This document shows positions 1,692 through 49,908 of a DNA stretch of 64,000 nucleotides, one piece after another. The notes beneath the pieces were generated by a model. It was given only the letters and a program-made list of their open reading frames with translations, was not told where the DNA came from and did not search any database. The stretch is taken from the NCBI RefSeq assembly GCF_006345805.1, contig NC_043018.1, positions 16,492,001-16,556,000 of the forward strand, given 5' to 3'. Origin of the DNA: Octopus sinensis. Taxonomy: Eukaryota. The position numbers and the translations under genes were made by a program. Positions within the stretch are counted from its first letter, which is position 1. Every line of letters begins with the position of its first letter.

Positions 1692-1890
1692 GTCCTCCTC
1701 CCCTTGCTCAAAGACAGTTTGCGTCCACAATATGCCAGTCAGGCTTTGCTGCCTAGATATGAAATGTCATTGTGTGTCTCTAGCGAGTTGCAGGTGTGTT
1801 CCTATAAATATCACTCGTGGCACTCATAACAGTATACTCCAAAGTGTAATCCCTATTCTCGTTTTCCTTGTAAATTTACTAAATTATTGA
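1692..1890 (+). CDS. Gene 1, terminal (mature peptide) exon of a Cys-rich knottin/toxin-like precursor; upstream exons lie before the window
   Basis: Acceptor tgtatttacag|G; phase 2 as in paralogues. Translates SSSPCSKTVCVHNMPVRLCCLDMKCHCVSLASCRCVPINITRGTHNSILQSVIPILVFLVNLLNY* (8 Cys, hydrophobic tail). Confidence 0.85.
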
Positions 1891-3387: not shown

Positions 3388-3507
<120 letters not shown>

Positions 3508-5508: not shown

Positions 5509-7243
5509 ATCATCTTCTATTTGTGAAAGGGATAAGTAATGGGTTGTGTAAAACATATGAACGAATGTGTGGCGATATTTGTCAAAACGTGCAGCTACAC
5601 TTCTCATCGAGAAAAATCTTCCTGCAATTACTCTTTCAAACAGTTGCTGCCATCTATCATGAAGATACTCTGCCCATTGCAATGCCAAGTGCAGGATATG
5701 AGATGTGTACTGTCAGCATATTTCGCGGAAGCCTTAAAACATCACAGAAAATGCTTTTTGGTATTTATTCAGGCTTCTATATTCTGAGTTCGAATCCCTG
5801 CAGTTCAACTGTTCTTTCCCTCCTTTTTGAGACGATAAATAAGGTTCCAATATTCCCCACCTCCTTTCCGATATTCGTAGAAACATGAGGTCTTTTAATT
5901 TACCTCCAGAAATTATGAAAGTTTGTAACACGATTTTTGACCTTAGGTAGCAACTGTTATTTCCTCTTTGCTTATCCCTAGAAACTATGCAAAATGAATA
6001 ATATTTCCTCCAGACATTCATGTCCTTAGATTGATTCAAACCCTAAAGATTCCCCTTTCAGGCTCTCCATCTACTCCTGCCAATTATCAGAGATGCACAT
6101 ATTGTCAGCCACTAAAGGACATCTCCAAGTGGTTAAGGTCAAGTAACTGGCGAACAAGTTTGTTGTATTGATCAGAATATTCGCTAAAACGATATTTATG
6201 CTTCAGCAAACCAGCCCTGTCGAAAATGTAATAGAAAATGGGTCACTTTGAAAGCATTGATGTCCAGGCACAAAAGCAAAGTGTGAAGGGAACAAGAGTC
6301 ATTTCCTTTAACTTCCAAATAGAATTAAACAGGAGATAACACTTACTATCCAAGGATAAAAGAAAGTGTCATCTATGTAACAGATAACCTCGCATTTCTT
6401 AGCCCGATTTCTGATTAAGTAATGATAATATTGTAAGCAAGCATCTTCAGTGGTATCTCAGTTCTCAATCTATCATGCAAAACTTATTGGAGATCTAATC
6501 TAAGCTGTGCTGCAAAGAGATGTTACGGCCCGACTTTGATTATTCTAATATTGGTAAATTAACATCTTGAAGAAATCTCTGAACTAACGTCTTGATACAC
6601 GTGTGCGGCTCTGATGTCTAAAGAAATAAAATCTACATTTACACGTTATATATGGAAAATTCCAGATTATATTTTAAATAAGAATGCCTATTTTTTTTAC
6701 AAAAGGTCGATTTTTTATAAGAATATATATTTTATTTTATATTAAAGCTCCGATACAAAATACAAAGCTGTCATAAATAAAATATTATTGGTTATAATGA
6801 CTTGGAGATCAGGGATAATCAGGATCTAAGCAGCAATTTGGACTTTGCACGTCTGAATGAGTCGTAAGTTGGTTTCTGGAAAAGAACTTAAAAATTGACT
6901 CCAATGAAGAACGTTGACATAACCGAAGATATAAATTCGATATAGTTTGAAATGATGTGTTCTAATTACTAATTCACACAGCTGGCGAAGTGCACTGCGG
7001 GTTAGTAAATATTGTATCTCATAACATTAATCAAATTGCTGATTTATACATACACACATACATACACACAAACACATACACATACAAATAGACGTACATA
7101 CATACACACATACACACATGCATACATACGTGCGTACATACATACATACATATATATATATATTATATATATATGTATATATATATATATATATGTATGT
7201 GGTTGTACGTATGTATACACACTCGCGCACGCACACACACACA

Positions 7244-7317
<74 letters not shown>

Positions 7318-8706
7318 GATGTGTGTTTGTGTGTGTAAAGAAGAAGAGAAAACACAGCGTGTACAAATTCAAGAATAGAATAGAAAACGACAGCTGGAGT
7401 CAGCAAAGTTTAACGGTGGTCAGTGTATAACTAGCTCTACACAACCCTCATCAACCAGTGTGAAATTTGCACCTGAGAAAGTCTACTGAGCTGTTTGTAA
7501 AAATACCGTTCGAATCAAACAAGTATGTAACATTTAAATTATTCTTTGCGACTGTATGTGATTAAGTAATAGCATTACACAGTTATGGTAATGATGATGG
7601 TGGTAGTGGCAGAGCTTAAACCGTTTGTTGCCTGTTTGCATGTGTACAATCCAAGATCTGCAAAAAGAGAGGATCACCGGAATGATTTTCTGATCTTCAC
7701 TTTATATCTCATCGATTGTATTTGATGAAAGGGAATCAGTTGACCCCTTCAGTTTTGGTTGAAGTCGGGCTTTTGTAAATTTTAATTAACGTAAATCGTT
7801 TGCTAAGAAACAAGTGAACCTATTTTGGCTGGATGTTTGTGTTATACATTTCTCATTATTTTACAAAAGATGTTCCCATTTTCTTACTTTATGTCAAAAT
7901 ATTCTCATCCAACAAACTGCTGATCTTTGCAACACTGGCCAACTGCTACCCTCCTTTCCATGGAACACTATTTCACCAAGATTAATATCCATGGGTTACT
8001 GTTTCTATTGAGTTGATTGACCATTATTCTTTGTTTTAAATCGTGTGAATATATTCTGGTTCTGGAGTAGCCTTGTCATAGCAATCAAAACAACGTGTTT
8101 TTCATAAAGCGTTTTTAGTTGGTGTATGTGTGTGTGTGTGTGGTGTGTGTGTGTGTATGCGTGTGTGTGTGCGTGCGTGTTTGGTAACAATGCTATATCT
8201 AAATGATGAATGTAGAATCTTGAAGATATTTTTTGACAGTTACTGAATACTGTCCCGTATTTAGAGCAAAGCCGACATGCATAACCTTCTTCTGATATGA
8301 GACTTATACCTGGGGTACTTCTTCATCGATTCTTCGCTTAGTTTTTCCTTGCCCAGATTAGTCATTGACATACCTCATAAATAAAAACAATAGCAAGACC
8401 ATTAATTAAAAGAGACACGTAATATGATGCTCTTCCAGAAAGTATTGTATTTATAAAGATATACATGATAAACATATTTCTGTGTGAGGATAACATGACA
8501 CATGTATTCAGCATCGAACAATTGTATTTAGTCATGTTTAGTCTCAGATTGTTACATACAAGTGCAACCTTTTATAAGTGAAATGTGCAGGAAAGTTTGA
8601 TTTGGGTTGAAGAAAACAGAGAAAATACATTTGACTGAGTGCATTTCACATACAAGATTCCACCAACTGCAAACTGACAAACATCTCATAATTGTTTTGA
8701 TTGCAG

Positions 8707-8747
8707 AAATAAAAATAATATAGCTATAGAAGCTAGATAAACTTGAA
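8707..8747 (+). other. Putative 41-nt non-coding (5' UTR) exon of gene 2
   Basis: CTGAC branch-like motif, then ttttgattgcag| ... aa|gtaaga. Same 41-nt spacing at 24346-24386 (+), 38488-38528 (-) and 59495-59535 (-). Confidence 0.4.
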
Positions 8748-9054
8748 GTAAGAATATTTCATTCACTGTGAACAACATGGGGAATATTTTGGACAAATGC
8801 TTCGAAGACGTCATCTTCTCCTAAATTATATATTCACATTTGAAAATAAATCTAGATTAGTACTATTGATGCAATTAAATTAGCCATATTACTTATTGTT
8901 TAAATGGTAAATCTTGGATTTTTAGTGAAATATATTTGAACAGCTAGAAGATAATTGTTACCTAAATTTCCAGCTGAAGACTTTTGCTTATTTTCTAAGA
9001 AAAATGCTTTTGTATTAATCACTCTCGTTATATGTGTCTATCATCAGGTGCGTG

Positions 9055-9118
9055 ATGAAAGGCATCATTGTCCTATTGTTTTGTGTATTCATTTCACACA
9101 CCTTCTCGGATAAACAAG
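9055..9118 (+). CDS. Gene 2, signal-peptide exon
   Basis: Acceptor catcag|gtgcgtgATG, donor caag|gtaagt. MKGIIVLLFCVFISHTFSDKQ plus 1 nt (phase 1). Confidence 0.88.
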
Positions 9119-9876
9119 GTAAGTAGAATTAGAAATTTCTTTTATTTTATAGCAATCCGAAACGTAGTAGGAGAAAAGGCGGAAAATAGAAGGGCGGGAA
9201 GGAGGAAAATGAATAACGTTACTTTAACGGTCTTTCGGGTGTACCCAATTTATATGCAATTAAAGCCTTTAAATAAATAACTCTATTTATCAAAACTACC
9301 CATAAACCAAATATACGGAGTTAAGATTCTTCTATATAATATATAACATTTAATTAACAATATGAATGATACAAATCGGGAAGGATTCTAGTGGTGTGGT
9401 CTCATCTCTTACTCCTGTATTTGATTCAGAACGTAAACACGAATGAAGGACACTAAGCACATTGCTCGTCGAGCTAACCATTCTGCCAGCTCTCCGCCGC
9501 CGCCCTTAGAATTCTTAATTATTAAACTAATAACAGAAGAGATTCAGCGAATGCTGTATATATAATTTTTCACGTGTATTTTGTTTGTCATCTTGTCATT
9601 CCTTTTTATTGGTCCTTTGGTTTTTTTATCTCCTTTTATGTATTAAAAACATCCATCACTACAGTGATGAGCCATATTTAAGTGTATGAGTGAGGAACTT
9701 CGAGTTCCAGTCTTCATGATCCTGCACCTTGTTTCAGATCGTCTTACCATAAATACGTTATCCTCCATTCAATGAATTACCTGTTGAGTGATGCATGGGT
9801 ATTTTGTGTATTTCTACACGAAACTTTGGTAAATGGACTTCTAATGCTTCCATATGTATTTTAATATTTCTTTCAG

Positions 9877-9937
9877 ATGTCGCTTCCGTCCGTCAAAAGA
9901 GAGGACATTCTGTAGTTTTGAGTAAATTGACTAAAAG
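9877..9937 (+). CDS. Gene 2, propeptide exon
   Basis: Acceptor tttctttcag|AT, donor aaaag|gtaaga. 61 nt, (D)VASVRQKRGHSVVLSKLTK(R); phases 1 and 2 match the flanking exons. Confidence 0.88.
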
Positions 9938-11271
9938 GTAAGATCTACATATCTACATAATCGAATTACTAGACAAGCGCCCTCTAGTGAGGTTTCATGG
10001 CATGTGTCTATAGTAGAGAGGTCATCTTTCTTGAGACTCATTCCTGATTGTAGTTTTGGTGTAAAAGAGAATATGAAACGGGAATATATCATGTGAGAGG
10101 ATAGGAGAAAATTTTGCATGGCAAAATGGGCAAGTGTCTCTTGCTTTTGCTTTTGCCGACCAAAGCCTTGTGAGTGGATTTGTTAGACGGAAACTGAAAG
10201 AAGCTCGTCGTATATATGTATTTATATATGTAGGTGTGTATATACGTTTGTGTGTCTATACCCCCACCCCAATATCGCTTGACAACCCATGCTCCAGTGT
10301 GTCCGTCCCCACAACTTATAGTTTCTGCAAAAGTCACCGATAGATTAAGTACTAGGCTTACAAAGAATAAATTTGCTTGACTAAAGGCGATGCTCCAGCA
10401 TGGCCACAGTCAAATGACTGAAACAAGCAAAAGAATAAAGAGTAAAAACTGAATAATATTCGTTTCTATTTTGCCTAGAAAATTCATCAACAATTCATTC
10501 AGCCATAGGTGCAAGCATGACTGTCTAGTTAACAAGTCCGAGCGTTCATTCCCTGAACATGTGTCTTCTGCTATACGCCCAGCGCGACCAGCGACCAATA
10601 CCATTGAATGAATGTGGTAGAGGAAAAAATTCTATTATCTATATCTATTATTGGGACCCGTCGAAATTCCACGGAATGGAAAAAGTTAAGAGGACATGTT
10701 TAAGAGAGAAAGAAGTATTCTTTAAATATTCTTGACGTTTGTCTGCATCCATTTCCTCACGTCATCGACTGCATTATTTTTACCTTTTTCCCCCTCTGAT
10801 CCGTGCTCCATGTCAGCTCATTCTTTCTCGAGCAGCTTGTATCTGTATTTCCTGTGAATCCAGAGTTGGCCTTTATAAACAAATATCAAATTTTAAGCGA
10901 GCACATAATAAATAACTACACTTATGCGATAAGCAATGGTCACTATGAGAAAAAAAATTAGTTCATAAAAATAGATACTTCTCACTATCAACACACCACC
11001 ACCACCACCACCACCATCACAGCAGCAGCATTCTCATTCTCTCTCTCTCTCTCTCCCTCTCTCTCTCTTCTCTCTTTCCCTCGTATTCTCTTTTTCTCTC
11101 GTTCTTCGCCTCTACTTTCAGCTCATCAATCAACGAATTTGGCTTAAGTACATTAATATTAATCACTTCTCTCTAATTCTTCTACTCTTTTTCTTCACTC
11201 CTCCCTCTCTCTCTCCTTATTAGTCTTACTCCACCTCGCACCCACTCCACCTTCAGCTTTCGAACTAATCT

Positions 11272-11664
11272 ATCTCTATATACAAAGCTGAAGTTGTCTG
11301 TGTGTGGCAGGTTTCGTAGCCTTCAACTTACACTATTTCCTCCGAGACCCTGCGGCGCAAGTTGACCAAATTTGAGAGTATGGTAGAAGAAGGTTTGCAT
11401 TTCCTACCGTAGAAGAAAATATTAAAATCAGGCCATGTTAACACGAAAAATTATTTACATCACAAAGGTGCTTTTTTTTCTATGAAAATCCCTGCTTTTT
11501 ACGATTTTGTGATTGCTGTGTCGCCATTTTTCCGTGTATTTCAACAGGAAAAATGTTCACTTAAAGAAAATAACAAACTACATAATGTAAAATGTTTACT
11601 TTTCAAAAGTTATAATTCTAAAGGGTCGAAACAAAGCCGAGAAACGCCGGGCGATACTGTTAGT
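11272..11664 (-). mobile_element. Non-autonomous Helitron/Helentron-like element
   Basis: Begins ACTA(A/G)CAGTATCGCCCGGCGTT and ends acagacaacttcagctttgtatatagagat on its own strand. Copies at 49261-49643 and 56854-57245 (+); partials at 1-150, ~25838-26032 and ~45310-45385. Confidence 0.5.
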
Positions 11665-12374
11665 TAATATATAATGGGCGAACGAACAAGTAGATTATCA
11701 TAGAGATATGTGTTTGCATATACCCGTATATTTTCCATTCTTGGATTGCACAATGTGAGATGTAATGTAACGGTCACCTACACAAACACAAGAGAGGTTG
11801 TCTTCATATTCTTATTACTATTTTCTTGCAGGCTAATTTAGCCAAAACTATATACACAAATGTGGCATGCTATACAGCTTCAATAACTTAAGCATTTACT
11901 CATAGAGAGACATTAATGTCCATCCTTAATAAATGACAATGAAGCAACGAGGCAAGAAAGTCGGTTTCTCTTTCTTTCTTTCCTTTTATTTGATACAGAG
12001 ACAAATATACCAAAGTAACCAGATTTGAAAATCATATAAAGGTTAAGATTCCCATTTTAAAAGTTATATTCAAGATGGAAGATTGTTTTGTCTCTTCTTT
12101 TGGAAACGTCGTTTTCATATCTTATTTAGGATGCGTAGAGAAGTACATAGGACAAACCACAATGACCGTAACAAAAGAAATGATACCACGTACAATGCAT
12201 ATTTGATTTCCCAGTTGCAGACGAGAAAATCTCGGGTAAATTCTGCTGAGATTCATGAATCAAAATTTTAATTTATTAATTTATGTCAGAATAGTGACGA
12301 TAAATTCTAACATAGAGGATCAATAAGACTTAGGCTGATTAAAGAGTATAGGGGGGGGTGGCATTTAAAAGTAG

Positions 12375-12537
12375 ACACAGTGGCTGTGTGATAAGTAGCT
12401 TGCTTACCACAACTACATGGATACGGGTTCAGTCCCACTGCGTGGTACCTTGAGTAATTGTGTTCTACTATAACCTCGTGGTGACCAAAGCTTTGTGAGT
12501 GGATTTGGTAGACGGAAACTGAAAGAAGCTCGTCGTA

Positions 12538-12538
<1 letters not shown>
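12375..12538 (+). mobile_element. tRNA-derived SINE family B ending in (TA)n; resembles common octopus SINEs
   Basis: tggctgtgtgataagtagcttgcttacc...gggttcagtcccactgcgtgg...gtagacggaaactgaaagaagctcgtcg. Further copies ~26565-26722 (+), 35365-35530, 37026-37186, 50416-50575 and 57934-58095 (-), plus fragments. Confidence 0.7.
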
Positions 12539-12589
<51 letters not shown>

Positions 12590-12740
12590 TGTATGTATGT
12601 ACATATTGTCGTCCGAAAATCGCTTGATAACCGATCTTTTCCTCGTAAGGAGATAAACATAGAATAAGTACTAGGCAAGTCCTGGTGGCGATTATTAACA
12701 GACATATATCAATACACAACATCTTACCTCTCTTCTAACT

Positions 12741-13222
12741 ATTCTTTTCTACTCTAGGTACAAGACCCGAAATGTTGGAGGAGTGGGCAATTCCTTTAGA
12801 TCGACCCCAGTACGCAACAGTTACTTAATTTATCAACCCCGAAAGGATGAAATACAAAGTCGACCTCGGCGGAATTTGAACTCAGAACGTTGCGGCAGAC
12901 GAAATACCTTTAAGCATATCGCACGGCGTACTAACGATTCTGCCAGCTCATAGACTTTCCCCTCTAACTATTCACACCAATTATTTATTAATTACGCTGT
13001 CACTAAGGCGGTGAACCGGCAGAAACTTTAACACGCCGGGCGAGTTGTTAAGTGATATTTCGTCTATCTTTACGTTCTGTGTTCAAATCCCGCCGAGGTC
13101 GACTTTGCCTTTCATCCTTTCGGAGTCAGTAAATTAAGTTCCAGTTGCTTACTGGGGTCGATATATTCGACTTGCCCCACTCCCCCAAAATTTCGGTCCT
13201 TGTGCCAAGAGCAGAAAAGAAT
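12741..13222. mobile_element. Inverted SINE-A pair, gene 2 last intron
   Basis: Same arrangement as 998-1416; head ggcggtgaaccggcagaa at ~13007. Confidence 0.75.
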
Positions 13223-13477
13223 TACCATATCACTGTCTATATCTACTTATCTACTTATGAAATTCGGGAAATAAATATTCATAGACTTGGTTTTTTTTTT
13301 AAATACTGGAGAAAGTACAAATCAAAATTTTTCGAAGAACGGTAAAATATGTCCTATTTGTTTCGGTTCTGCATGATGTAGCTTCACATACCGCATAAAA
13401 TGCAACAGCTTCTTCCCTAAGGAGGAACCATAATTTTAATGAGTTTCTTATTTCACTACAATATTCTGTATTTACAG

Positions 13478-13586
13478 GTATGCTTGCTCAAATTCTTATT
13501 GTAAAGGAGCAATCCCAGTAGATAACTGCTGCTTAGGTCCGGACTGTTTTTGCATTTGGGACGCATCGGGTTGCTGGTGTACTTAA
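13478..13586 (+). CDS. Gene 2, mature-peptide exon (tail-less 35-aa 8-Cys peptide; 77-aa precursor)
   Basis: Acceptor tgtatttacag|G. YACSNSYCKGAIPVDNCCLGPDCFCIWDASGCWCT*; the paralogous tail frame continues after TAA to TGA at 13673. Confidence 0.88.
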
Positions 13587-14857
13587 CAAAATATCATCCG
13601 TGCCACTCTTAACAGTATACTCCAAAGCGTAATCCCTATTCTCGTTTTCCTTGTAAATTTACCAATTTATTGACGTTCTGCTCTTTTGAATCTTGTGGAA
13701 AAATGTCATAAGTTAGATTGTTTTTATAAAAGGAGAAAATCTACAACATTTTCAATTTTGAAATTTAACCAATCGTCAAATCCTTCTAATATATTCATGC
13801 TATCTAATATATTTATGCTATTAATCCGTCAAATTTTAATGAAATCTCAATTAAATAAATTTATTAAAGCATTACAAATACTTAGTGCTTCGTTTTTCAC
13901 TTTGCTATTTGTTTGTAAGTTATTGAACGGTCTTTGTGGTTTGTTCTTCGCTGTGGTACTTGCCTTTAAGTTATCGATATGAATGGTAAGAATTTACATT
14001 GCAGTGGTATGCTATATTATTGTAAAAACATATATTCTCCGAGTTCTATTTTACAAACTTTAAAGAAGAAATAGGAAAAAATAAGAGATAAGAAAGGAAA
14101 AGAGAGAAAAACAACTTAACCAGTAGAAATTGAGGGGAGGGACTATGGGTCACATAACCCAGAACGAATAGTGTGCTCAGCTGGGCTTCGCAGAAGTGAC
14201 CGTGATGGCGTTGCCGCGAAGAACGTTGCAGCAGCCACTTCCTGAGGTTCATTAATCCAATGGGCCGCCTTCATCCCTCAGTTTGGAATGAAGTCCAAGA
14301 ACACCTGAGGTCTCTACGTAACTGGTACAAACTGATAGTGGCCAGTGAGGACCAAATATTTCTTGAATGTTCTCTCCTCGTGATTATGGAAGGTGACACC
14401 CGGATTTGCAGCCGTTGCAGCAAGGTTGCTTCCTTGTCAAAAATATTTATTGATGTTGTGGTGTGTTTGATCGTACTGTCGTAGTCGAGTGGACAGGTGA
14501 TTGAGCTACGATCGATTGGTGATTGAGTTATGATCACTTCTAAATTCGTTTTGAAAGATATAATGTGTATAAGTTCCCACTGTGCACACTGCCGTTCCAT
14601 TCTTAAGAAGGCTGCACGTGATACGATGATGGGTTTTCAGTAATTTGTTGTCAGGCGAGCGATCCCGATGTCTTCCGCATTTTCTTGACTAAGGTTGAAA
14701 AATTGAACAAAGTATGTCAAATAATTAAATACATACACACAAAAATGTATAAATATATATATATATAAACTTAGATATGTTTTGACCAAAGATTGGTCCG
14801 GGCCATGTTTAATTTAATACCACAACATGATACGTACATATATATATATATATATTA

Positions 14858-14899
<42 letters not shown>

Positions 14900-14963
14900 A
14901 TATATATATATATTATATATATATTATATATATATATATATATATATTAGATAGATAGATAGA

Positions 14964-17900
14964 TACCTGCACGCATCCCACAATAACATCAACACCACCA
15001 ATAGTAAATCGAAATTCAAAACACACACCAACTCGAGTCCCAAAATCTGCCGGTATTCCCAACGTGAGAGAACATGTCTGCTGAGTGACTGTCCCTTCAC
15101 TCATCTTCCAGGGACCCGACGCACAAACAGAAACGGGGCTTCAAGCCAACACACAAACCTGAATAAATAAAAATAGAAACACACCATGCTGCAGTAATGC
15201 TGGTCCAGTCTTTTCAGGAAGACACAAAAACAACAACAACAAAAGTGGAAACTACAACCCTATCCAACAGTGCAACCACACCTCCAGCCAAAAACTGCTC
15301 CCTAAGCAGGAAAATTCTTTTTTAGCCATGTTGAACATGGCAAAAGAAATACACAAAAACATTCTAGCCATCATTCTAGCCATTCTAGCCATCACCATCC
15401 TATGCTATTACCCCAGTGCACCAATTCCCCACATTGCTGCCACTAACACACACAAAAAATCCAAGCCCTCTGCAACAGTCAAAACTAGCCACTACACTAA
15501 CCGCCACATTCCTACTCAATGCACAAGGTGTCAGCCCTTCCATCAATGCACAAAAATGGAAGGTCCAATTCATTGAAGACTGGGTTGGTAACCATTCACA
15601 CCGCATCCCTTTCTTCATTCTCACTGAGACCCACCTTGACAACTCCCACTTGGAAGCCGAAGTGAGAGTGAAGAATTTCACAACCATCCGCGCGGATCGT
15701 ATCGGCAGGAGGAAGGGTGGAACTGCCATTTTCCTGCATGATTCATTTACGGCAGATGGAAATAGTATTCTCCAACGGCTACTGTGAATCAGTCACCGTG
15801 CACAACAAAGCCAATGACCTGACAGTATTTGGCTCTATAGGCCGCCCCAAACACCCTACTGTGCTTTAAAGAATGCCTCAACAGCATTAAGTGCTTTATT
15901 CAACAGTGCCATTCTAGCAACATACTCATGATGGGAGACTTCAATCTACCCTGTGTTGACTGGACTACAAACTGTTTGAAACCAAGCACTCCCGCCTCAA
16001 ACGCTGACAAAGAAGCAGCAGAGTCACTTTTCGACTTTACGAATGAGTTTTTCTTGTCCCAACTTGTCCTTGCACCAACAAGACATCAGAACATTTTGGA
16101 CCTAGTGTTTAGTAACCACACTAACACTATACATAACGTTACAGTGGAAAAAACCCTTCTTTCAGACCATGACATGGTTCTCTGTAACATGAAATTCTAC
16201 ACAGCCGAAAGCTAATCCTAGTGACCTTCCTCCAGCCCACCCATTTGACAACATGGATCTCCATAATGCCAACTGGGATGCAATCAGGAACGAGCTATCA
16301 CATGTTGACTGGTCCTTTACACATACACACATCTCCACCACCCATAAACATCTTGGCAGATCTTTGTAGACACCGTCACAGACTATGTGCAAAACACTCC
16401 CCACCAAGACCTGTGAACAAAAAGTGCAGAATCCCCCAAAACAGAAAAACCATTATCAGAAAAATAAAAAGAACAAACAAAAAAATTAACAAACTAATGT
16501 ACTGCCAACAGCAACACACATTCGACGGCTATCGCACTGCTTGAATCCAAACAATATAACCTCCAACAATGCATGAAGACCCTCATCAATAACCAAAGAT
16601 CAGCTGAGGAGAAGTGGGCCATTGAAAAAATCAAACTCAACCCCAAAGTGTTATTTTCATTTGTGAGGAAACGCAGGGTCACTGTCTCCACTGTAGGCCC
16701 TCTAATTGACGAAACTGCCAAATCCATGGCCGAGATACTGCAGAAACAATACTGCTCTGTTTTCAGCAATCCTGATATGGCCGATCTGGGCTGTATCAGT
16801 GATGTTAACCCCCAACACACTATATCGGACATAACGTTTAGTGCCCCTGATGTCTTAGCGGCGATAAACGAAATAAAACACAATTCAGCAGTAGGCCCCG
16901 ATAGGTTCCCTGCTTGTGTCCTGAAGGTGTGTCGACACCAACTTGCATCTCCCCTTGCTAATCTGTGGAGAAACTCACTGGATGCTGGCTATATTCCAAA
17001 AAACCTTCTGTCCCAGTCTGTTGTCCCAGTTTTCAAAAAGGGAAACAAGTCCCTTGCAGTGAATTACCGTCCGATCTCACTCACCTCTCATATCATCAAG
17101 GTATTTGAGAGGTTGGTGAGATCTCGAATAACTCAATTTCTGGAAAGCAACAGACGGCTGATCTCCAACCAACATGGGTTCCGTAATGGAAGGGACTGCC
17201 TAACGCAGCTCCTGCATCACTTTGAGGACATTTTGAGAGCTTTGGGAAAGGGCTCCAACACCGATGTCATCTACCTTGATTTCAGTAAGGCCTTCGACAG
17301 GGTCGATCACAAGATCCTATTGAAAAAACTATCCAACATTGGTGTCTCTGGAAAGTTACTGAAATGGATCAAGTGTTTCCTGACAGACAGATCTCAACAT
17401 GTTGTAGTTGAAGGGGTAAAATCAAGCCCAGCCAAAGTCAGTAGTGGCGTTCCGCAAGGCACTGTGCTGGGCCCACTTCTTTTCATCATTTACATTAATG
17501 ACATTAATGACATCATCAAGCACAGCAACATAAAAATCTTTGCAGATGACTCCAAGCTACAGAAGGTCATAAATGAGGCGAGTGACCGGACATGCCTTCA
17601 GTCAGATCTACTGGCTGTTATCCAATGGGCAGAAAAAAACAATATGCTGCTGAACGAGGATAAATTTGAGCTAATCCACTTTGGAAAAGAGGATGCCCTG
17701 AAACTCCCATACTCCCTTCCTTCAGGTGAAACTCTCGCGGCGTCCAACAACATCAGAGACTTGGGAGTAATTGTGGACAACAACGTAAGCTGGGCCACTC
17801 ATATAAACACCAAAGTTGACATGGCCCGCAGAATGTGTTCCTGGATTCTCAGAACTTTCCAGTCGAGAGATATCCACACCATTATCCTTCTCTTCTCCAC

Positions 17901-18518
17901 TTTTGCCCGACCCCACCTTGAATACTGTTGTCCACTGTGGTCTCCCCACACAATACAAGGTATCATAAAAGTTGAAGCACCTCAAAGGGCAATCACAAAA
18001 AAGATAGATGGCATGACAGGCCTCGACTATTGGGGTCGACTAGAAAAGCTAAAACTCTATTCTCTCCAACGTCGTCGTGAGCGCTACATCATCTGCATGA
18101 TGTGGAAAATATTCCATCAGCATTGCCCAAATGATGTTGGCATCACCTTTAAGGTACATCCAAGGCTTGGGCCCCGTGCCATCCGCCCAAAACAAAAATC
18201 GCACTCTCATCTCATAACAACAATACGGCACAATTATTTCACCTCAATTGGCCCCGCTCTCTTAACATTACACCAAAACACATTAAAACAGAAACTGACC
18301 CTATAGGGTTCAAGACGTCTTTGGACAGATTCCTTCAAGAAATCCCGGATAAACCCCCTACACCCGGATATGTCTCTGTAAACAATAACTCTCTACTTGA
18401 GTGGGCCATAGTGCCCAAATTCTGACTTGAAAGACTTCACCAGGTGGTGCTATTAAGTTAGACATGGCCTGGGCCAATAATGGCCGAAACCTATCAAAGT
18501 ATCAAAGTATCAAAGTAT
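14964..18518 (+). mobile_element. 5'-truncated, frameshifted non-LTR retrotransposon (CR1/L2/Jockey group): ORF1 C-terminal remnant, APE endonuclease and reverse transcriptase
   Basis: CCCH-like CRYSQRERTCLLSDCPFTH at 15048-15104. APE motifs LTETHL, GDFNLP, LDLVFSN, SDHDMV. RT motifs YRPISLTS, QHGFR, YLDFSKAFDRVDH, GVPQGTVLGPLLF, FADD. 3' tail (TATCAAAG)3 at 18492-18515. Confidence 0.92.
16573..18306 (+). CDS. LINE ORF2 reverse-transcriptase fragment (577 aa open stretch of a disrupted ORF2)
   Basis: Canonical non-LTR RT motifs. Upstream endonuclease is split across frames, so the element is probably inactive. Confidence 0.85.
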   Translation: MKTLINNQRSAEEKWAIEKIKLNPKVLFSFVRKRRVTVSTVGPLIDETAKSMAEILQKQYCSVFSNPDMADLGCISDVNPQHTISDITFSAPDVLAAINEIKHNSAVGPDRFPACVLKVCRHQLASPLANLWRNSLDAGYIPKNLLSQSVVPVFKKGNKSLAVNYRPISLTSHIIKVFERLVRSRITQFLESNRRLISNQHGFRNGRDCLTQLLHHFEDILRALGKGSNTDVIYLDFSKAFDRVDHKILLKKLSNIGVSGKLLKWIKCFLTDRSQHVVVEGVKSSPAKVSSGVPQGTVLGPLLFIIYINDINDIIKHSNIKIFADDSKLQKVINEASDRTCLQSDLLAVIQWAEKNNMLLNEDKFELIHFGKEDALKLPYSLPSGETLAASNNIRDLGVIVDNNVSWATHINTKVDMARRMCSWILRTFQSRDIHTIILLFSTFARPHLEYCCPLWSPHTIQGIIKVEAPQRAITKKIDGMTGLDYWGRLEKLKLYSLQRRRERYIICMMWKIFHQHCPNDVGITFKVHPRLGPRAIRPKQKSHSHLITTIRHNYFTSIGPALLTLHQNTLKQKLTL

Positions 18519-18548
18519 ATGTATATATGTATATACATATGTCGCACG

Positions 18549-18580
<32 letters not shown>

Positions 18581-18583
18581 TCA

Positions 18584-18631
<48 letters not shown>

Positions 18632-18674
18632 CATGCGTACATACATACATACATACATACACACATACATGGAA

Positions 18675-18706
<32 letters not shown>

Positions 18707-19433
18707 ATACCAAAGGTTCATTTGAAATATTTCCATGACCAGAGGCCTAGCATGTAGAAAATTTACCCAATGGACCATATATTACTCATATAAATACAGT
18801 GTACATTTAAACACAGAGAGGTATCTGCACGTTTGAGAGGACAGATAAATTCCAAACCACTATTCGGGATAAATTTTGAATGGAAAGAAAAATTAAAACA
18901 TTTACCATGTAACTCCTGGACGAATGGTTTCAGACGATTTTTAGCAAATAAAATAATCTGCTAGGCGAAGGCTTCTTCAGCATGTAAAACTTAGATTAAA
19001 TATGTATACACGAGGCAATCATCCAGTATCTGTCTCGTGCTTATACATTCTAATATTTTCAAATCTACCACGCAAGCGCAATAAGTAAATATGCCGGCTT
19101 TTTATTTCGAAAATTATCCAAGAAATAATTTATCACTAATTAATAATATTAAAGGGTAATCTTAAATATTAGAAATTTCCATTACAAGTGACCTAGCGTG
19201 TAAAACATTTACTCAATAGACTAGATATTATTCATATAAATGCAGCGTACATATAAACACAAAAGATGTATCCATCATACGGATACCTGCACGCTAGAGA
19301 GGACAGTCATTAGGGATAATTTATAGAATGGAATGGAAAGTAAAACATCCCTAATAGTGGTTCAGAATTTAAACTGTCCTTTCTAGCGTGCAAGTACCCT
19401 ATCATAGATACTTATTTGGTTTTTAAATGCACA

Positions 19434-19485
<52 letters not shown>

Positions 19486-19633
19486 ATATATATATTACGT
19501 GTATATATATATATAATATATATATTATATATATATATATATGATATATATTATGTAATATTTATATAAATATATATATCAATGGCTGAAGGCATATACA
19601 TACATAAACATACATACATGCATATATATATAC

Positions 19634-19687
<54 letters not shown>

Positions 19688-19852
19688 TATATATATTTGT
19701 ATGTGTGTGTGTGTGTATATATGTATATGTATATGTCTGTATGTATGTATAATGTATATATATATAATAGATGTATATGTATGTTATTATATATATATGC
19801 GCATATTATAATATATATATGTACGTATACGTATATATATATAATATATATA

Positions 19853-19883
<31 letters not shown>

Positions 19884-19884
19884 C

Positions 19885-19964
<80 letters not shown>

Positions 19965-20269
19965 CAAATGGGACAAGAGTGCAAACATCCGCACAAATAG
20001 GTAATACAAAAAGGACAACAAAACATCCAGATAAACGATACAAAAAAACGGACGGGTCGTTCGAAGCATTTAATTTTCAGTCAAGAACCGGATCATCCTC
20101 GCAATCTCGGCTGATTAATCTTGGGATTGCTTCAATCTGGCCAGCCCCAAGAGTATTAGATTCCTTGCAGAAAAGCATCGAATATATACGAAACAAGGAC
20201 GGAAAACCGTACGACGTTACACGAATATATATACAAAAAAAAATACAAAGAAACAACAACAACAACAAC

Positions 20270-20308
<39 letters not shown>

Positions 20309-20637
20309 TATAATAATAATAATAATAATAATAACAGGAGCACTAGGAATGATCAAGAAGGGAACCGAAAATTATATGAGAATGATCCCTGGCTTACCAT
20401 CCCTGCAAGAAGTGCAAAAGATTGTCTTAACTGGTACATCACACGTATTGAGAAGAGCATTGTCGATGTGAGAACTGTTGCTGCTCATGTATTTTAATTT
20501 AACTTAAAAAAAAAAAAAATGAACGAACTACTGAGTTTGGTTTAATGGCCCACCAATGTATACTATGAGTTTCTCTGCCCTAGGAGTCGGGAAGACACTC
20601 GGCAAGAAATGGAAGCAAATTTGAAAGAAGAAAAAAA

Positions 20638-20705
<68 letters not shown>

Positions 20706-23700
20706 AATAATAATATTAACAGGACATAATAACAGGCGTCTTTTGATTGGAGACAAATTGAAGTCAGCTGGCGTGTTGGGAATTTAGGCTTACGGCAGAG
20801 GGTAGCATGACGCTGTGGCAGTGATCGTGGTCAAACGAAAAAGGGCTAACGGTAGTTCAACAGTCACGTGAGCAGAGAAGAGAGACAAAAAGAGGAACAA
20901 AGGAAACAAAGAGGGAGAGAAGAGAGAGCAAAAATTGGAAGAAAGGTATTAAGTAGGGGGAGAAGTGAAAGAGAGCGAGAGAGTGCGTAGACGGAAGAAT
21001 GAAGGAGTGGCGAGAAAAAGAGAGAGACTGTGACACAGTGGAGGGCAAAGTAAGAAAGGCAAAGAAATGTGAGAGAGGGGAAAGAGAGAGAGTGTTGAAG
21101 AAGTCGTTCAAAATTTAGTGCAATATGTGCTTACATATAAGAAAACAAAATGTAGTACGCAACACATATATATATGTGTGTGTTTGTGTGTCTGTTCGTG
21201 TGTATGTATCATCTTCTATTTGTGAAAGAGATAAGTAATGGGTTGAGTAAAACATATGAACAACTTTTTGGCGATATTTGTCAAAACATGTAGCTACACT
21301 TCTCATCGACAAAAATCTTACTGCAATTACTCTTTCAAACTGTTGCTTTCATCTATCATGAAGATACTCTGCCCATTGCAATGCCAAGTGCAGGATATGA
21401 GATGTGTACTGTCATCATATTTCGCGGAAGCCTTAAAAAGTACAGAAAATGCTTTTTGGTATATATTCAGGCTTCTATATTCTGAGTTCGAATCTCTGCA
21501 GTTCAACTGTTCTTTCCCTCCTTTTTGAGACGATAAATAAGGTTCCAATATTCCCCACCTCCTTTCCGATATTCGTAGAAACCTGAGGTCGTTTAATTAA
21601 CGTCCAGAATTTATGACAGTTTGTAACACGATTTTTGACCTTAGGTAGCAACTGTTATTTCCTCTTTGCTTATCCCTAGAAACTATGCGAAATGAATAAT
21701 ATTTTCTCCAGACATTCATGTCTTTACATTGATTCAAACCCCAACGATTCCCCTTTCAGGCTCTCCAACTTCTCGTGACCATTATCAGAGATGCAAGTAT
21801 TGCCAGCCACTAAAGGACATCTCCAAGTGGTTAAGGTCAAGTAATTGGCGAACAAATTTGTGGTATTGATCAGAATATTCGCTGATACGATATTTTTGCT
21901 TCAGCAAACCAGCCCCGAATCTTTGGAAAATGTAATAGAAAATGTGTCACTTTGAAAGCATTGATGTCCAGGCACAAAAGCAAAGTGTGAAGGGAACAGG
22001 AGTAATTTCCTTTAACTTCCAAATAGAAGTAAACAGGAGATAACACTTACTATACAACGATAAAATAAAGAATAAGAATTCAATTTAAAGTGTCATCTAT
22101 GTCACAGATAACCCCGCCTTTCTTAGCTCGAGATCTGATTAACTACTGATTATATTGTAAGCAAGTATCTTCATTGGTATCTCAGCTTTCAATCTATCAT
22201 GCAAAACTTATTGGAGATTTAATCTAAGCTGTGCTGCAAAGAGATGTTACGGCCCGACTTTGATTATTCTAATATCGGTAAATTAACGTCTTTAAGAAAT
22301 CTCTAAACTAACTTCTTGATACATGTATGCAGCTCTGACGTCTAAAGAAATAAAATTCTACATTTACACGTCATATGAGAAAAATTCCAGATTATATTAT
22401 AAAAAAGAATGCCTATTTTTTTTACATAAGAGTATATATTTTACTTCATATTAAATCCCTGATACAAAATATAAAGCGGTCATAAATAAAATATTATTGG
22501 TTATAAAGACTTGGAGATCAGGGATAATCAGGATCTAAGCAACAATTTGGACTTTGCACATCTGAATCAGTCGTAAGTTGGTTCGGAAAAAGAACTTAAA
22601 AATTGTCTCCAATGAAGAAAGTTGACATAACCGAAGATATAAATTTCGAGATAGTTTGAAATGATGTTTTCTAATTACTAATTCACACAGCTGGACGAAG
22701 TGCACGGCGGGTTGGTAAGTATAGTATCTCATAACATAAATCAAATTGCTGATGCTTATACATACACACATTCATACACACATACATACACACATACACA
22801 CATACACACATACATACACACATACATACATACGTACGTACGTACATATATACATACATATATACCTCTATACATACATATATATATTTATATACATATA
22901 TGTATGTGGTTGTATGTATGTATACACACACACACGCACGCACACACACATATATATATTTATATAGGTGTGTGTGTGTGTGTGTTTGTAAAGAAGAAGA
23001 GAAAACACAGCGTGTGCAAATTCAAGAATAGAAAAGAAAACGACAGCTGGAGCAAAAAAAGTTTAACGGTGTTCAATGAATAACTAGCACTACACAACCC
23101 TCATCAACCACTTTGAACTTTGCACAAGAGAAAGTCTACTGAGCTGTTTGTAAAATACCGTTCGAATCTAATAAGTATGTACACATTTAAATCATTCTTT
23201 GCGACTGTATGTGATTAAGTAATAGCATTACACAGTTATGGTAATGATGATGGTGGTAGTGGCAGAGCTTAAACCGTTTGTTGCCTGTTTGTATGTGAAC
23301 AATCCAAGATCTGCAAAGAGAGAGGATAACCGGAATGATTTTCTGATCTTCACTTTATATCTCATCGATTGTATTTGATGAAAGGGAATCAGTTGACCCC
23401 TTAAGTTTTGAATGGATTCGAGCTTTTGTAAATTTTGTTTTTTAATTAACGTAAATCGTTTGCTAAGAAACAAGTGAAGCTATTTTGGCTGGATGTTTGT
23501 GTTATACATTTCTCATTATTTTACGAAAGATTTTCCCATTTTCTTACTTTATGTTAAAACATTCTCATCCAACAAACTGCTGATCTTTGCAACACTGGCC
23601 AACTGCTTCCCTCTTTTCCATAGAACACTAGTTGACCAAATTTGCTATCCCTGTGTTGCTGTTTGTATTGAGTTGATTGACCATTATTCTTTGTTTTAAA

Positions 23701-24693: not shown

Positions 24694-24757
24694 ATGAAAG
24701 GTATCAGTGTCCTACTGTTTTGTGTATTCATTTCATACACCTTCTCGGAAAAACAAG
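24694..24757 (+). CDS. Gene 3, signal-peptide exon
   Basis: catcag|gtgcgtgATG ... caag|gtaagt. MKGISVLLFCVFISYTFSEKQ. Confidence 0.88.
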
Positions 24758-25514
24758 GTAAGTAGAATTAGTAATTTCTTTTATTTTATAGTAATCCGAA
24801 AAGTAGTGGGAGAAAAGGCGCAAAATAGAAGGGCGGGAATGAGGAAAATGAATAAAGTTACCTTACTGGTCTTTCGGGTGTACCCCATTTATATGCAATT
24901 ACAGCTTTTAAATAAATAACTCTATTTATCAAAACTACCCATTGACCAAGTATACGGAATTAAGATTCTTCTATATAATATATAACATTCAATTAACAAT
25001 ATGACTGATACAAATCGGGAAGGATTCAAGTGGTGTGCTCTCATCTCTTACTCCTGTATTTGATTCAGAACGTAAACACGAACGAAAGGACACTAAACAC
25101 CTTGCTCGTCCAGCTAACCATTCTGCCAGCTCTCCGCCGCCTCCCTTAGAATTCTTTATTATTAAAATAATTACAGAATTAACAAGTGCTGTATATATAA
25201 TGTTTCACGTGTCTTTTCTTTTTTGTTTTTGTTATTCCTTTTTATTACTCCCTTGGGTCTTTTTTATCTCCTTTTATGTATTAAAAACATCCATCACTAC
25301 AGTGATGAGCCATAATTAAGTGTAGGAGTGAGGAACTTCGAGTTCCAGTCTTCATGATCCTGCATCTTGTTTCAGATCGTCTTACCATAAATACGTTATC
25401 CTCCATTCAATGAATTACCTGTTGAGTGATGCATGGGTAATTTGTGTATTTCTACACGAAACTTTGTTAAATAGACTTCTAATGCTTCCATATGTATTTC
25501 AATATTTCTTTCAG

Positions 25515-25575
25515 ATGTCGCTTCCATTCGTCAACAGAGAGGAGCTTCTGTAGGTTTGAGTAATATGACTAAAAG
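25515..25575 (+). CDS. Gene 3, propeptide exon
   Basis: tttcag|AT ... aaaag|gtaaga. (D)VASIRQQRGASVGLSNMTK(R). Confidence 0.88.
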
Positions 25576-27024
25576 GTAAGATCTTCAAATCTACATAATC
25601 GAATTAATAGACAAGCGCCCTCTAGTAATTTTTCATAGCTTGTGTCTAAAGTAGAGAGGTCATCAATAATGGCGCAGTTCCTTTCTTGATACTCATTCCT
25701 GATTGTAGTTTTGACGTAAAAGAGAATATGAAACGTGAATATATCAAGTGAGATGATAGGAGAAAATTTTCACGAGTAATATAGGCGTAGGAATGGCTGT
25801 GTGTTAAGTAGCTTGCTTACCAAACACATGGTTCCGGGTGCGTTTTTTCTATGAATATCCCTACTTTTTACGATTTTTTGACTGCCGTGTCGACATTTTT
25901 CCGTGTATTTCAACCAGAAAAATGTTCACTTAAAGAGAATAATAAACTACATAATACTAAATATTTACTTTTCAAAAATTGTAATTGTAAAGGGTCGAAA
26001 CAAAACCGAGCAACGCCGAGCGATACTGTTAGTTAATATATAATGGGCGAACGAACAAGTAGATTATCATACAGATATGTGTTTGCATGTGCGCGTATAT
26101 TTCCCGTTGTTGGATTGCACGATGTGTGATGTAATGTAGCGGTCACTTACACAAACACAAGAGAGGTTGATCTTCATATTCATATTACTATTTTCTTGCA
26201 GAGACAGATAAACCAAAGTAACCAGATTTGAAAATCATATAATGGTTAAGATTCCCATTTCAAAAGTTATTTTCAAGATGGTGGATTGTTTTGTCTCTTG
26301 TTTTGGTAACGTCGTTTTCATATCTTATTTAGGATGCGTAGAGAAGTACATAGGACAAACCACAATGACCGAAACAAAAGAACTGCAGGTTTGATTTCCC
26401 AGTTGCAGACGAGAAAATCTCGGGTAAAAATCTGCTGAGATTCATGAATCAAAATTTTAATTTATTAATTTATGTCAGAATAGTGACGATAAATTCCAAC
26501 ATAGAGGATCAATAAGACTTAGGCTGATTGAAGAATATCGGGGGGGGGGGGTTAAAAGTAGAGACACTGGCTGTGTGATAAGTAGCTTGCTTACCACAAC
26601 TATATGGATACGGGTTCAGTCCCACTGCGTGGCAACTTGGGCAAGTGACTCCTACTATAGCCACGGCCGACCAAAGACCTGTGAGTGGATTTGGTAGACG
26701 GAAACTGAAAGAAGCTCATCGTATATATGTATTTATATATGTAGATGTGTGTATAAGTTTGTGTGTCTGTTTGTCCCATCCTCCAATATCACTTGACAAC
26801 CGATGATGGTGTGTTTACGTCCCCACAACTTATAGGTTCGGGAAAAGAGACCGATTGAATAAGTACTTGGCTTACAAAGAATAAGGCCTAGGGTAGATTT
26901 GCTGGTCTAATGGCGGTACTCCAGCATGGCCACAGTCAAACGACTGAAACATTACCTTCGGTAATTGTGTTTTACTATAGCTTTGTTAGTGGATTTAGTA
27001 GACGGAAACAGAAAGAAGCTCGTC

Positions 27025-27068
<44 letters not shown>

Positions 27069-27231
27069 ATATTGTCCTCCGAAAATAGCTTGATAACCGA
27101 TTTTGTTGTGTTTTCATCCCCGTAACGTAGTGGTTCGGCAAGAGATAAGATAGAATAAGTACTAGGCAAGTCCTGGTGGCGATTATTAACAGACATACAT
27201 CAATACACAACTTCTTACTTCTCTTCTAAGT

Positions 27232-27694
27232 ATTCTTTTCTACTCTTGGTACAAGGTCCGAAATGTTGGGGGAGTGGTCCATTCCTATAGATCGACCCCA
27301 GTACGCAACTGGTACTTAATTTATCAACCCCGAAAGGATTAAAGACAAAGTCGACCTCGGCGGAATTTGAACTCAGAACGTAGCGGCAGACGAAATACCT
27401 CTAAGCATATCGCACGGCGTACTAACGATTCTGCCAGCTCACAGCCTTTCCCCTATAACTATTAAAACCATTTATTTATTAATTACCCTGTCACTAAGGC
27501 GGTGAACCGGCAGAAGCGTTAGCACGCCGGACGAGGTGTTAAGCGGTATTTCCTCTGTTCTGAGTTCAAATTCCGCCGAGGTCGACATTGACTTTCATCC
27601 TTTCGGGTCGTTTACAGTTGTTTACTGTGGTCGATCAATTCGACTGGCCCCACTACCCCAAAATTTCGGGCCTTTTGCCAAGAGTAGAAAAGAA
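27232..27694. mobile_element. Inverted SINE-A pair, gene 3 last intron
   Basis: Same arrangement. Confidence 0.75.
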
Positions 27695-27971
27695 TTACCA
27701 TATCACTGTCTACATCTACTCATCTACTTATGAAATTCGGAAAATATATATTCATAGACTTGGTTTTTTTTTAAATACTGGAGAAAGTACAAATGACAAT
27801 TTTTGAAAGAACGGGAAAATATGACCCGTCCTATTTGTTTCGATTCTGCATGCTGTACGTTCACATCCCGTTGGATTTTTTCGACGTCGATAAAATGCAA
27901 CAGCTTCTTCCCTAACGAGAAATCATAATTTAATGAGTTCATTAATTCACTACAATATTCTGCATTTACAG

Positions 27972-28167
27972 GTCCGCTTGCTCAAGGGGCTATTGTCAAA
28001 GATATATGCCAGCCATTCGCTGCTGCCCAGTTATGGTATGTATGTGCATTTGGCAAATATCGGGTTGCTGGTGTAGAACACAAGATAAAAGCCGCGCCAC
28101 TCATAATAGTATACTCCAAAGTGTAATCGCTATTCTCGTTTTCCTTGTAAATTTACCAATTTATTGA
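27972..28167 (+). CDS. Gene 3, mature-peptide exon with hydrophobic tail (106-aa precursor)
   Basis: tgcatttacag|G. SACSRGYCQRYMPAIRCCPVMVCMCIWQISGCWCRTQDKSRATHNSILQSVIAILVFLVNLPIY*. Confidence 0.88.
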
Positions 28168-34206: not shown

Positions 34207-34402
34207 TCAATAAATTGATAATCTTACAAGGAAAACGAGAATAGCGATTGTACTTTGGAGTATAGTGTTATGAGTGCCACGCGTGTTATTTTGTAAATGA
34301 CACCTGCAACCCGATGCTACCCAAAAGCATATACATTTCATACCTGGGCAGCAGGAAATGGCTGTCATATATTTTTGACATATACTCGTTGTGCAAGCGT
34401 AC
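34207..34402 (-). CDS. Gene 4, mature-peptide exon with hydrophobic tail (106-aa precursor)
   Basis: Minus-strand acceptor tgtatttacag|G. YACTTSICQKYMTAISCCPGMKCICFWVASGCRCHLQNNTRGTHNTILQSTIAILVFLVRLSIY*. Confidence 0.88.
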
Positions 34403-34678
34403 CTGTAAATACAGAATATTGTAGTGAAATAATGAACTCATTAAATTATGGTTTCTCGTTAGGGAAGAAGTTGTTGCATTTTATTGACGTCGAAAAAATC
34501 CAACGGGATGCGAACGTACAGCATGCAGAACCGAAACAAATAGGATGGGTCATATTTTTCCGTTCTTTCAAAAATTGTCATTTGTACTTTCTCCAGTATT
34601 TAAAAAAAAACCAAGTCTATGAATATATATTTCCCGAATTTCATAAGTAGATAAGTAGATGTAGACAGTGATATGGTA

Positions 34679-35116: not shown

Positions 35117-35309
35117 AGTTAGAAGAGGCGTAAGAAGATGTGTATTGATGTATGTCTGTTAACAATTGCCACCAGGACTTGCTTAGTACATTATCTCTTG
35201 CCGCACCGCTACGTTACGAGGATGAAAATACACCAAGATCGGTTATCAAGCTATTTTCGGAGGACAATATATACATACATACATACATATATATATGTAT
35301 ATATATATG

Positions 35310-35362
<53 letters not shown>

Positions 35363-49850: not shown

Positions 49851-49908
<58 letters not shown>

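Follow-up and report, generated by a model that had tools for sequence, protein, structure and literature searches.

The eight-cysteine knot toxins of spiders (agatoxin, purotoxin and psalmotoxin types) have a size of about 35 residues and a C-C-CC-CxC-CxC framework; they are made with a signal, a propeptide and a basic cleavage site and lack a hydrophobic C-terminal tail. Another theme is known from Ly6/uPAR proteins (e.g., Lynx1) and the snake three-finger toxins: a small disulfide-rich domain loses its hydrophobic C-terminal signal. Here we describe a locus of Octopus sinensis that recalls both. The window, i.e., the whole stretch of DNA that was analysed, comprises 64,000 nucleotides (NC_043018.1, positions 16,492,001 to 16,556,000), is about 96.5% identical to Octopus vulgaris and contains six gene copies of an uncharacterised, Octopus-only family with three exons each. 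One of them, gene 2, has acquired a nonsense codon (TAA) behind a complete eight-cysteine domain, and a C-terminal tail that its sisters keep is thereby cut off. The preliminary description of this DNA saw a switch from a tethered to a secreted peptide. We treat this as a hypothesis and consider it more probable, if only tentatively, that a tolerated event of birth-and-death turnover has been caught.

Gene 2 and its nonsense codon

The features of gene 2, all on the plus strand, are the following.

9055..9118, plus strand: exon 1, ATG and signal peptide MKGIIVLLFCVFISHTFSDKQ; donor CAAG/GTAAGT in phase 1; matches the first exon of the O. bimaculoides proteins P0001/P0002
9877..9937, plus strand: exon 2, propeptide (D)VASVRQKRGHSVVLSKLTK(R); acceptor tttcag/AT, donor AAAG/GTAAGA in phase 2; dibasic KR end
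13478..13583, plus strand: coding part of exon 3, a 35-residue eight-cysteine domain, C-x5-C-x8-CC-x4-C-x-C-x6-C-x-C, by direct reading
13584..13586, plus strand: TAA nonsense codon; the aligned codon is TCA (Ser) in the closest relatives and TTA in gene 4
13587..13673, plus strand: relic tail, 28 in-frame codons and the family TGA, with two changes private to gene 2
13788..13789, plus strand: site of a deletion of about 197 nt in the 3' flank, relative to the other five copies
13850..13868, plus strand: cluster of ATTAAA/AATAAA poly(A) signals, at a position common to the paralogues

Exon 3 opens at the acceptor TTTACAG/G (13477/13478), and its frame reads YACSNSYCKGAIPVDNCCLGPDCFCIWDASGCWCT, which means 35 amino acids with eight cysteines. 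The TAA falls two residues past the last cysteine. Behind it the same frame continues as QNIIRATLNSILQSVIPILVFLVNLPIY to the TGA at 13671-13673. In gene 4 the codon aligned with the TAA is TTA (Leu) at 34296-34294 of the minus strand. Up to this point the preliminary description was accurate. It had read gene 2 as ...CWCT followed by TAA where gene 4 has TTA, and the tail as in frame and undamaged down to the TGA at 13673; all 28 codons are indeed open. It had also taken the lesion for a single-base nonsense change that spares all eight cysteines, and a stop just behind the cysteine domain of an otherwise intact gene agrees with this.

The splice sites of gene 2 are all canonical (9055-9118, 9877-9937, 13478-13586), and the precursor comprises 77 residues. 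Start codon, signal exon, KR site, the eight cysteines and the poly(A) signals are intact, and no further lesion was seen in the open reading frame or at the splice sites. With a single lesion, the predicted product is a complete eight-cysteine peptide of 35 residues. A peculiarity of the propeptide may be added: it reads RQKR (9895-9906) where the sisters have RQQR, which makes a full R-x-K-R furin-type site inside the propeptide.

The likely fate of the gene product can be sketched as follows. Gene 2 appears to be a real member of an Octopus-specific tandem array of prepropeptide genes, in which a single-base change, most likely from TCA (Ser) to TAA, ends the frame after the cysteine domain. 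Since the stop sits in the last exon, the mRNA would escape nonsense-mediated decay. The 77-residue precursor would enter the endoplasmic reticulum and be cleaved after KR, and a free disulfide-rich peptide of 35 residues would leave the cell, provided that gene 2 is expressed. The sisters keep the hydrophobic tail, which is probably an attachment signal for glycosylphosphatidylinositol (GPI) or a short membrane anchor.

An Octopus family with a conserved tail

The exon 3 copies in the window were located by local tblastn, with the cysteine piece and the tail piece as separate queries. The five copies other than gene 2 start at 1692(+), 27972(+), 34402(-), 47609(-) and 55199(-), and in 5/5 the frame reads through into the tail. 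They belong to these units:

1692..1890, plus strand: gene 1, exon 3 (cysteine domain, tail and TGA); exons 1-2 lie outside the window
24694..28167, plus strand: gene 3, with tail; exon 1 24694-24757, exon 2 25515-25575, exon 3 27972-28167
34207..38180, minus strand: gene 4, with tail; exon 1 38180-38117, exon 2 37401-37341, exon 3 34402-34207
47411..47609, minus strand: gene 5, exon 3, with tail; a unit without its own exons 1 and 2
55001..59189, minus strand: gene 6, with tail; exon 1 59189-59126, exon 2 58368-58308, exon 3 55199-55001

The layout is the same throughout the family. Exon 1 encodes the signal peptide (MKGISVLLFCVFISYTFSDKQ, donor CAAG/GTAAGT). Exon 2 contributes about 20 propeptide residues with a dibasic KR at the end, which is completed by the first base of exon 3. 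Exon 3 carries a hypervariable eight-cysteine domain and the conserved tail. For the tailed paralogues the N-terminal signal peptide MKGISVLLFCVFISYTFS on exon 1 was read directly in the sequence. The three-exon model follows from the O. bimaculoides proteins, which show the propeptide exon; a two-exon model, with the signal exon joined directly to exon 3, was dropped for this reason. The gene 5 unit (47411-51200) is without the segment that elsewhere carries exons 1 and 2 (the equivalents of 8215-10045), which leaves gene 5 as an orphan exon or else as an alternative 3' exon that uses exons 1-2 of gene 6. As all six copies end in TGA, an alternative genetic code of the ciliate type was considered, with TAA as a sense codon and TGA as the sole stop, but it was ruled out, the window being octopus nuclear DNA. 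Matches of tblastn to the motif NCCLDPD at 6838, 22547, 40326 and 61325 were likewise discarded as chance hits in repeated non-coding DNA.

Databases have little to say about the family. A first protein search returned only two matches, both unnamed O. bimaculoides proteins (P0001/P0002). An HMMER profile search of 1.84 billion representative proteins yielded 10 matches; 9 belong to the family, come without exception from O. bimaculoides or O. vulgaris and are labelled "uncharacterized" or "hypothetical", and the remaining one (P0010) is a repetitive protein. Sequence searches of Pfam and the PDB revealed no significant match, an Rfam search of the window returned no matches, and a limited literature collection on cephalopod knottins and tethered cysteine-rich peptides contained no description of such a family. 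The O. vulgaris "hypothetical proteins" over the array (L003, L004, L005; CAI9738802, CAI9738804 and the 153-residue P0013) are chimeric models, which join propeptide exons of several copies and translate the cysteine exons in a wrong frame. The family is therefore effectively unannotated in O. vulgaris.

In all, 28 exon 3 copies were examined, 6 from the window, 13 from O. vulgaris and 9 from O. bimaculoides. The eight cysteines are invariant in the 23 sequences that were aligned, and the tail is kept in 26 of the 28 copies from the three octopus genomes; the exon 3 copies thus represent a genuine paralogue family and not a chance reading frame. Every O. bimaculoides copy and all but one of the O. 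vulgaris copies carry the tail. By this distribution the tail is the ancestral state, and the objection anticipated in the preliminary description, that the tail-less form might be the older one, does not apply.

The tail consists of about 12 polar residues and 13-19 hydrophobic ones that end the protein. This hydrophobic end (mean Kyte-Doolittle value 1.7-2.5) lies at the very C-terminus of all tailed copies. In GPI signals, small residues at omega and omega+2 precede the hydrophobic stretch by about 9-10 residues; a crude omega-site rule picks out, in the window copies, a small-residue triplet (NNT, NIT or DKS) that lies 26 residues before the C-terminus. A GPI-attachment signal fits best, because the hydrophobic part is shorter than one would expect of a transmembrane helix and no residues come after it; the tail is probably such a signal or a short membrane anchor, and it may also be a C-terminal pro-region that is cleaved off. 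Among close pairs of copies the constraint on the tail is weak.

The mature domain evolves in a different manner from its surroundings. The duplication units are 80-90% identical across kilobases of intron and intergenic DNA. Around exon 3 the mean nucleotide identity among the six window copies is 92% at the intron end, 61% in the cysteine domain, 87% in the tail and 93% in the 3' flank. Genes 5 and 6 differ in 8/106 bases of the cysteine domain, in 0/84 of the tail and in 1/378 of the intron. In seven close pairs the cysteine domain has collected 25 nonsynonymous changes and 1 synonymous change, against about 4.3:1 expected under neutrality (binomial P = 0.03, for pairs that are partly interdependent). 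Judged from these comparisons, diversifying selection acts on the cysteine domain, a disulfide scaffold that lies between conserved flanks. Such a pattern is typical of conotoxin and other effector-peptide families.

The order of the cysteines is that of knottins (C-C-CC-C-C, at least six cysteines), and their spacing is compatible with a knot. AlphaFold2, applied to the 35 residues of gene 2 with the family alignment, predicts a C-terminal hairpin. A Foldseek search of the PDB with this model returned cystine-knot peptides in 10/10 matches (spider toxins, tachystatin, a plant knottin and the agouti knot), at E 5-10 and TM 0.37-0.59. The family profile finds 8 weak matches in the PDB (E 0.18-10), 7 of which are eight-cysteine spider knot toxins. 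A few members graze the Pfam families Toxin_7 (best E 0.044) and Toxin_9 (E 0.049), both below the cut-off; gene 2 has no Pfam match and no significant match to a curated toxin or knottin family (best PDB profile match E 0.18). Since the matches are weak and the confidence of the model is moderate, "knottin-like" is a reasonable working label that the predicted fold suggests, and membership is not demonstrated.

Some other features of the window may be listed for completeness. It is rich in microsatellites. An open reading frame of 330 amino acids at 32029-33021 (-), between the convergent genes 3 and 4, is without a Pfam match and possibly a transposon remnant. In intron 2 of gene 2, an element of about 480 bp (12741-13222) matches its own reverse complement with about 74% identity; it recurs at the equivalent place in every unit and looks like a miniature inverted-repeat transposable element.

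Origin, age and meaning of the tail loss

Three O. vulgaris copies that have the motif QNIIRAT in common with gene 2 are its closest relatives, the best of them being L003 24643 with 69% protein identity. All three read TGT AGT TCA CAA where gene 2 reads TGT ACT TAA CAA. TCA (Ser) is also found at this codon in the O. vulgaris orthologue of gene 4. The O. bimaculoides copies have C-x-C-S/N-S-Q/K before the tail, most of them C-x-C-S-S-Q. From the closest relatives, the gene 4 orthologue and the O. bimaculoides copies, the ancestral codon was most likely Ser (TCA), not Leu. The step from Leu to stop assumed in the preliminary description has to be replaced by one from Ser to stop, and the TTA of gene 4 is, on this comparison, a separate change in the window's lineage.

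The intact relic had further been taken to mean that the stop is recent. This conclusion does not hold. Counted against 16 other copies, gene 2 has 26/577 private changes in the intron, 13/404 in the 3' flank and 2/84 in the tail; the tail value does not differ from that of the flanks taken together (39/981, Poisson P = 0.35). One of the two changes in the tail is synonymous. The other, His to Leu, hits the His of TH(N), which is present in all tailed copies of the window and of O. vulgaris, though some O. bimaculoides copies lack it. Of the 252 single-base changes that are possible in the tail, just 6 would produce a stop codon, and the probability that the tail would still be open after neutral drift over the whole gene 2 branch is 0.86-0.95. 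As the tail changes at a flank-like rate, the flanks are as conserved as the tail and an open tail is to be expected under neutrality, the age of the stop is undatable from the tail. The intact tail carries no dating power.

For the comparison with O. vulgaris, three loci of OX597835.1 were used, which cover 7562061-7638077 and 7647505-7709700 and leave out the 9.4 kb in between (7638078-7647504). Window positions 21065-64000 are collinear with O. vulgaris at 94-97% identity, and so is the gene 1 unit (950-3538) at 95%; such agreement points to a very close relative of the sequenced O. vulgaris or to a divergent haplotype. Between these blocks lie about 17.5 kb in the window, as against 1.25 kb in O. 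vulgaris. In a three-way sliding comparison O. vulgaris first follows the left repeat copy, from 3862 to about 6250, with 94-98% identity and then shifts to the right one (from about 21994) with 95-99%. This leaves one more feature:

about 6200..21900 (15.7 kb), no strand: segment without a syntenic counterpart in O. vulgaris, holding all gene 2 exons and a LINE; hybrid junction at L005 7382-9750

The hybrid junction has the signature either of unequal recombination between tandem units or of assembly collapse. An orthologue of gene 2 was not found in the fetched O. vulgaris loci, where a paralogue with 88% identity is the best match. The two repeat copies have diverged by 8-12%, far more than the roughly 3.5% between the genomes; the duplication therefore predates the split, and the absence in O. 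vulgaris appears to be derived. A tree built from 900 nt of intron 2 groups genes 3 and 4 with their respective orthologues, with 100% support and on short branches. Gene 2 stays unpaired, with an end branch of 0.078 versus 0.002-0.025 for the orthologue pairs. Gene 2 is, by these comparisons, dispensable in the sister genome. The LINE (long interspersed element, a non-LTR retrotransposon) occupies 15416-18306 (+), about 1.7 kb downstream of gene 2; its reverse-transcriptase frame (16573-18306, 577 aa, Pfam RVT_1 at E 2.7e-31) is apparently intact and is preceded by a frame of 123 aa.

Gene 2 is not the only copy that has parted with its tail. The O. vulgaris frame at L003 5063-5216 (-) ends in ...CRCVPEDNTLGTQKKKICKL / ...NTLGTQKKKICKL, and the hydrophobic tail and the original stop are gone. 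The alignment reveals a deletion of about 308 nt from the middle of the tail into the 3' flank; exons 1-2 and the eight cysteines are intact. With a nonsense codon in gene 2 and a separate deletion in this copy, the alignments indicate that the tail was lost twice independently, by different mutations. Other copies testify to turnover as well. L003 14021 (+) is without the second cysteine (SSSPCSSTISFQF...), its intron is highly divergent (branch 0.63 from the midpoint root, about 1.05 in all), and it is probably decaying. Partial exon relics occur, too. In the O. vulgaris orthologue of gene 3 (L005 15767-15958) the tail differs from that of gene 3 at 6/28 residues and matches the type of genes 5 and 6, which suggests gene conversion between paralogues.

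How is the tail loss of gene 2 to be interpreted? The second tail loss, the copy short of a cysteine, the gene conversion and the deletion of the gene 2 unit in the sister genome lead us to favour, with due reserve, a tolerated event of birth-and-death turnover over an adaptive switch: the allele would be tolerated, dispensable and of undatable age. Next in rank comes the adaptive alternative, possible but doubtful, that a tethered knottin became a secreted one and was retained as such, much as the three-finger toxins came about by loss of the Ly6 anchor. The stop lies exactly at the domain boundary and leaves a complete eight-cysteine unit, everything but the tail is intact, the mechanistically different loss in O. 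vulgaris also spared exons 1-2 and all cysteines, and diversifying selection on the cysteine domain is what one would see in secreted effector peptides. Selection on the truncated state, however, has left no sign, the tail of gene 2 changing at the rate of its flanks, and the O. vulgaris assembly lacks the entire unit at the syntenic position. This very absence also suits the view that gene 2 is simply dead, a fresh pseudogene without a useful product that awaits decay or deletion. The nonsense codon removes a part that 26/28 relatives keep and that O. bimaculoides and the O. vulgaris group have both conserved, although the cysteine domains cannot be aligned beyond their cysteines; loss of such a tail would therefore probably destroy the normal function. 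The 197-nt deletion, the largest number of private 3'-flank changes among the window copies and the other degenerate copies (the one short of a cysteine, the exon relics) point in the same direction. A pseudogene nevertheless appears unlikely, with one lesion only and splice sites, start codon, KR site and all cysteines intact, and the excess of private changes largely reflects a comparison made without an orthologue.

Technical or molecular ways around the stop deserve less credit. That the TAA is an error of sequencing or assembly, or a rare null allele that the sequenced animal happened to carry, is improbable: the cysteine domain being hypervariable, the surrounding sequence is unique (at least 31% protein difference from any other copy), and a substitution outside a homopolymer context is atypical of assembly artefacts. 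In favour of this view, no independent record of the gene 2 sequence was found, and the array is repetitive and prone to copy-number variation. Very improbable indeed is a bypass of the stop, by which some tailed protein would still be made, be it by read-through of the TAA into the CAA or by double A-to-I editing of UAA to UGG. TAA-C/CAA is a relatively weak context for termination, and coleoid cephalopods recode their mRNAs extensively; UAA, however, is the least leaky stop, two edits would be required, and the RNA fold of the exon is no more stable than that of shuffles (z = 0.04), which means that there is no obvious double-stranded substrate for editing. Of course, the preference for a tolerated turnover event has to face several adverse points. 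The O. vulgaris "deletion" could be an assembly collapse. Two tail losses with complete cysteine domains and intact upstream exons could mean that tail-less forms are favoured and not merely tolerated. In an exact look-up of the gene-call collection the gene 2 precursor has no record; nor has that of gene 3, and because this sister is intact, the missing record is not evidence of absence. The role of the tail as a membrane tether is putative, and the omega-site rule finds no conserved equivalent in the QNIIRAT subgroup or in several O. bimaculoides copies. Finally, the AlphaFold2 model is only moderately confident (pLDDT 67), and the fold and profile matches are all statistically insignificant.

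Comparison with known peptide systems

The family as a whole is more interesting than one stop codon: it is uncharacterised and specific to Octopus, its evolution is conotoxin-like, and it has a hydrophobic tail. In fold and profile searches the spider knot toxins come closest; the octopus peptides share their size, cysteine framework, predicted C-terminal beta-hairpin and the sequence of signal, propeptide and basic cleavage site. Unlike them, the octopus family possesses the tail, is molluscan and Octopus-only, and yields no significant match (E >= 0.04) and no Pfam membership. The mussel myticins and mytilins are molluscan, too, and contain eight cysteines in a variable mature peptide of about 40 residues with a C-terminal extension that is removed. 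That extension, however, is acidic and not hydrophobic, and no search revealed any sequence similarity.

The Ly6/uPAR proteins provide a conceptual parallel only. Their LU domain has about 70-90 residues and 8-10 cysteines, in contrast to 35 residues and a different cysteine pattern in octopus, and a UPAR_LY6 Pfam match was not found in the octopus family. By analogy, one may still imagine a private Octopus family of GPI-anchored cystine-knot modulators of the cell surface, "prototoxin"-like, which were repeatedly released by loss of the anchor signal (gene 2 and L003 5216(-)) in an independent molluscan replay of the route from Ly6 to the three-finger toxins. This idea is, in our estimate, rather unlikely. 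Engineered "tethered toxins", in which a knot peptide is fused to a GPI signal for cell-autonomous channel block, are artificial constructs; the tailed octopus proteins, whose anchoring is putative, would be their natural counterpart if the tail is a GPI signal, with a knot peptide carried by a short linker and a lipid anchor. Should such lipid anchoring be confirmed, no earlier natural counterpart would exist, and the proteins would form a new, cephalopod-specific class of cell-surface modulators. In that case, two natural tail-less variants, gene 2 and the O. vulgaris deletion copy, would be at hand for studying how secreted effector peptides originate from membrane-bound ones.

In gene architecture and mode of evolution the octopus genes resemble the conotoxin superfamilies. 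There, too, signal, propeptide and mature peptide reside on separate exons with long introns, a hypervariable mature region that conserves its cysteines is embedded in conserved signal, intron and untranslated sequences, and the genes are clustered and subject to birth and death. Homology to conotoxins is not detectable, and in octopus the mature peptide precedes a conserved hydrophobic tail. The array cleanly illustrates conotoxin-style evolution in a cephalopod: the mature exon is hypervariable, the introns and untranslated regions around it are nearly identical, and unequal recombination, gene conversion and turnover at the level of exons are combined with this.

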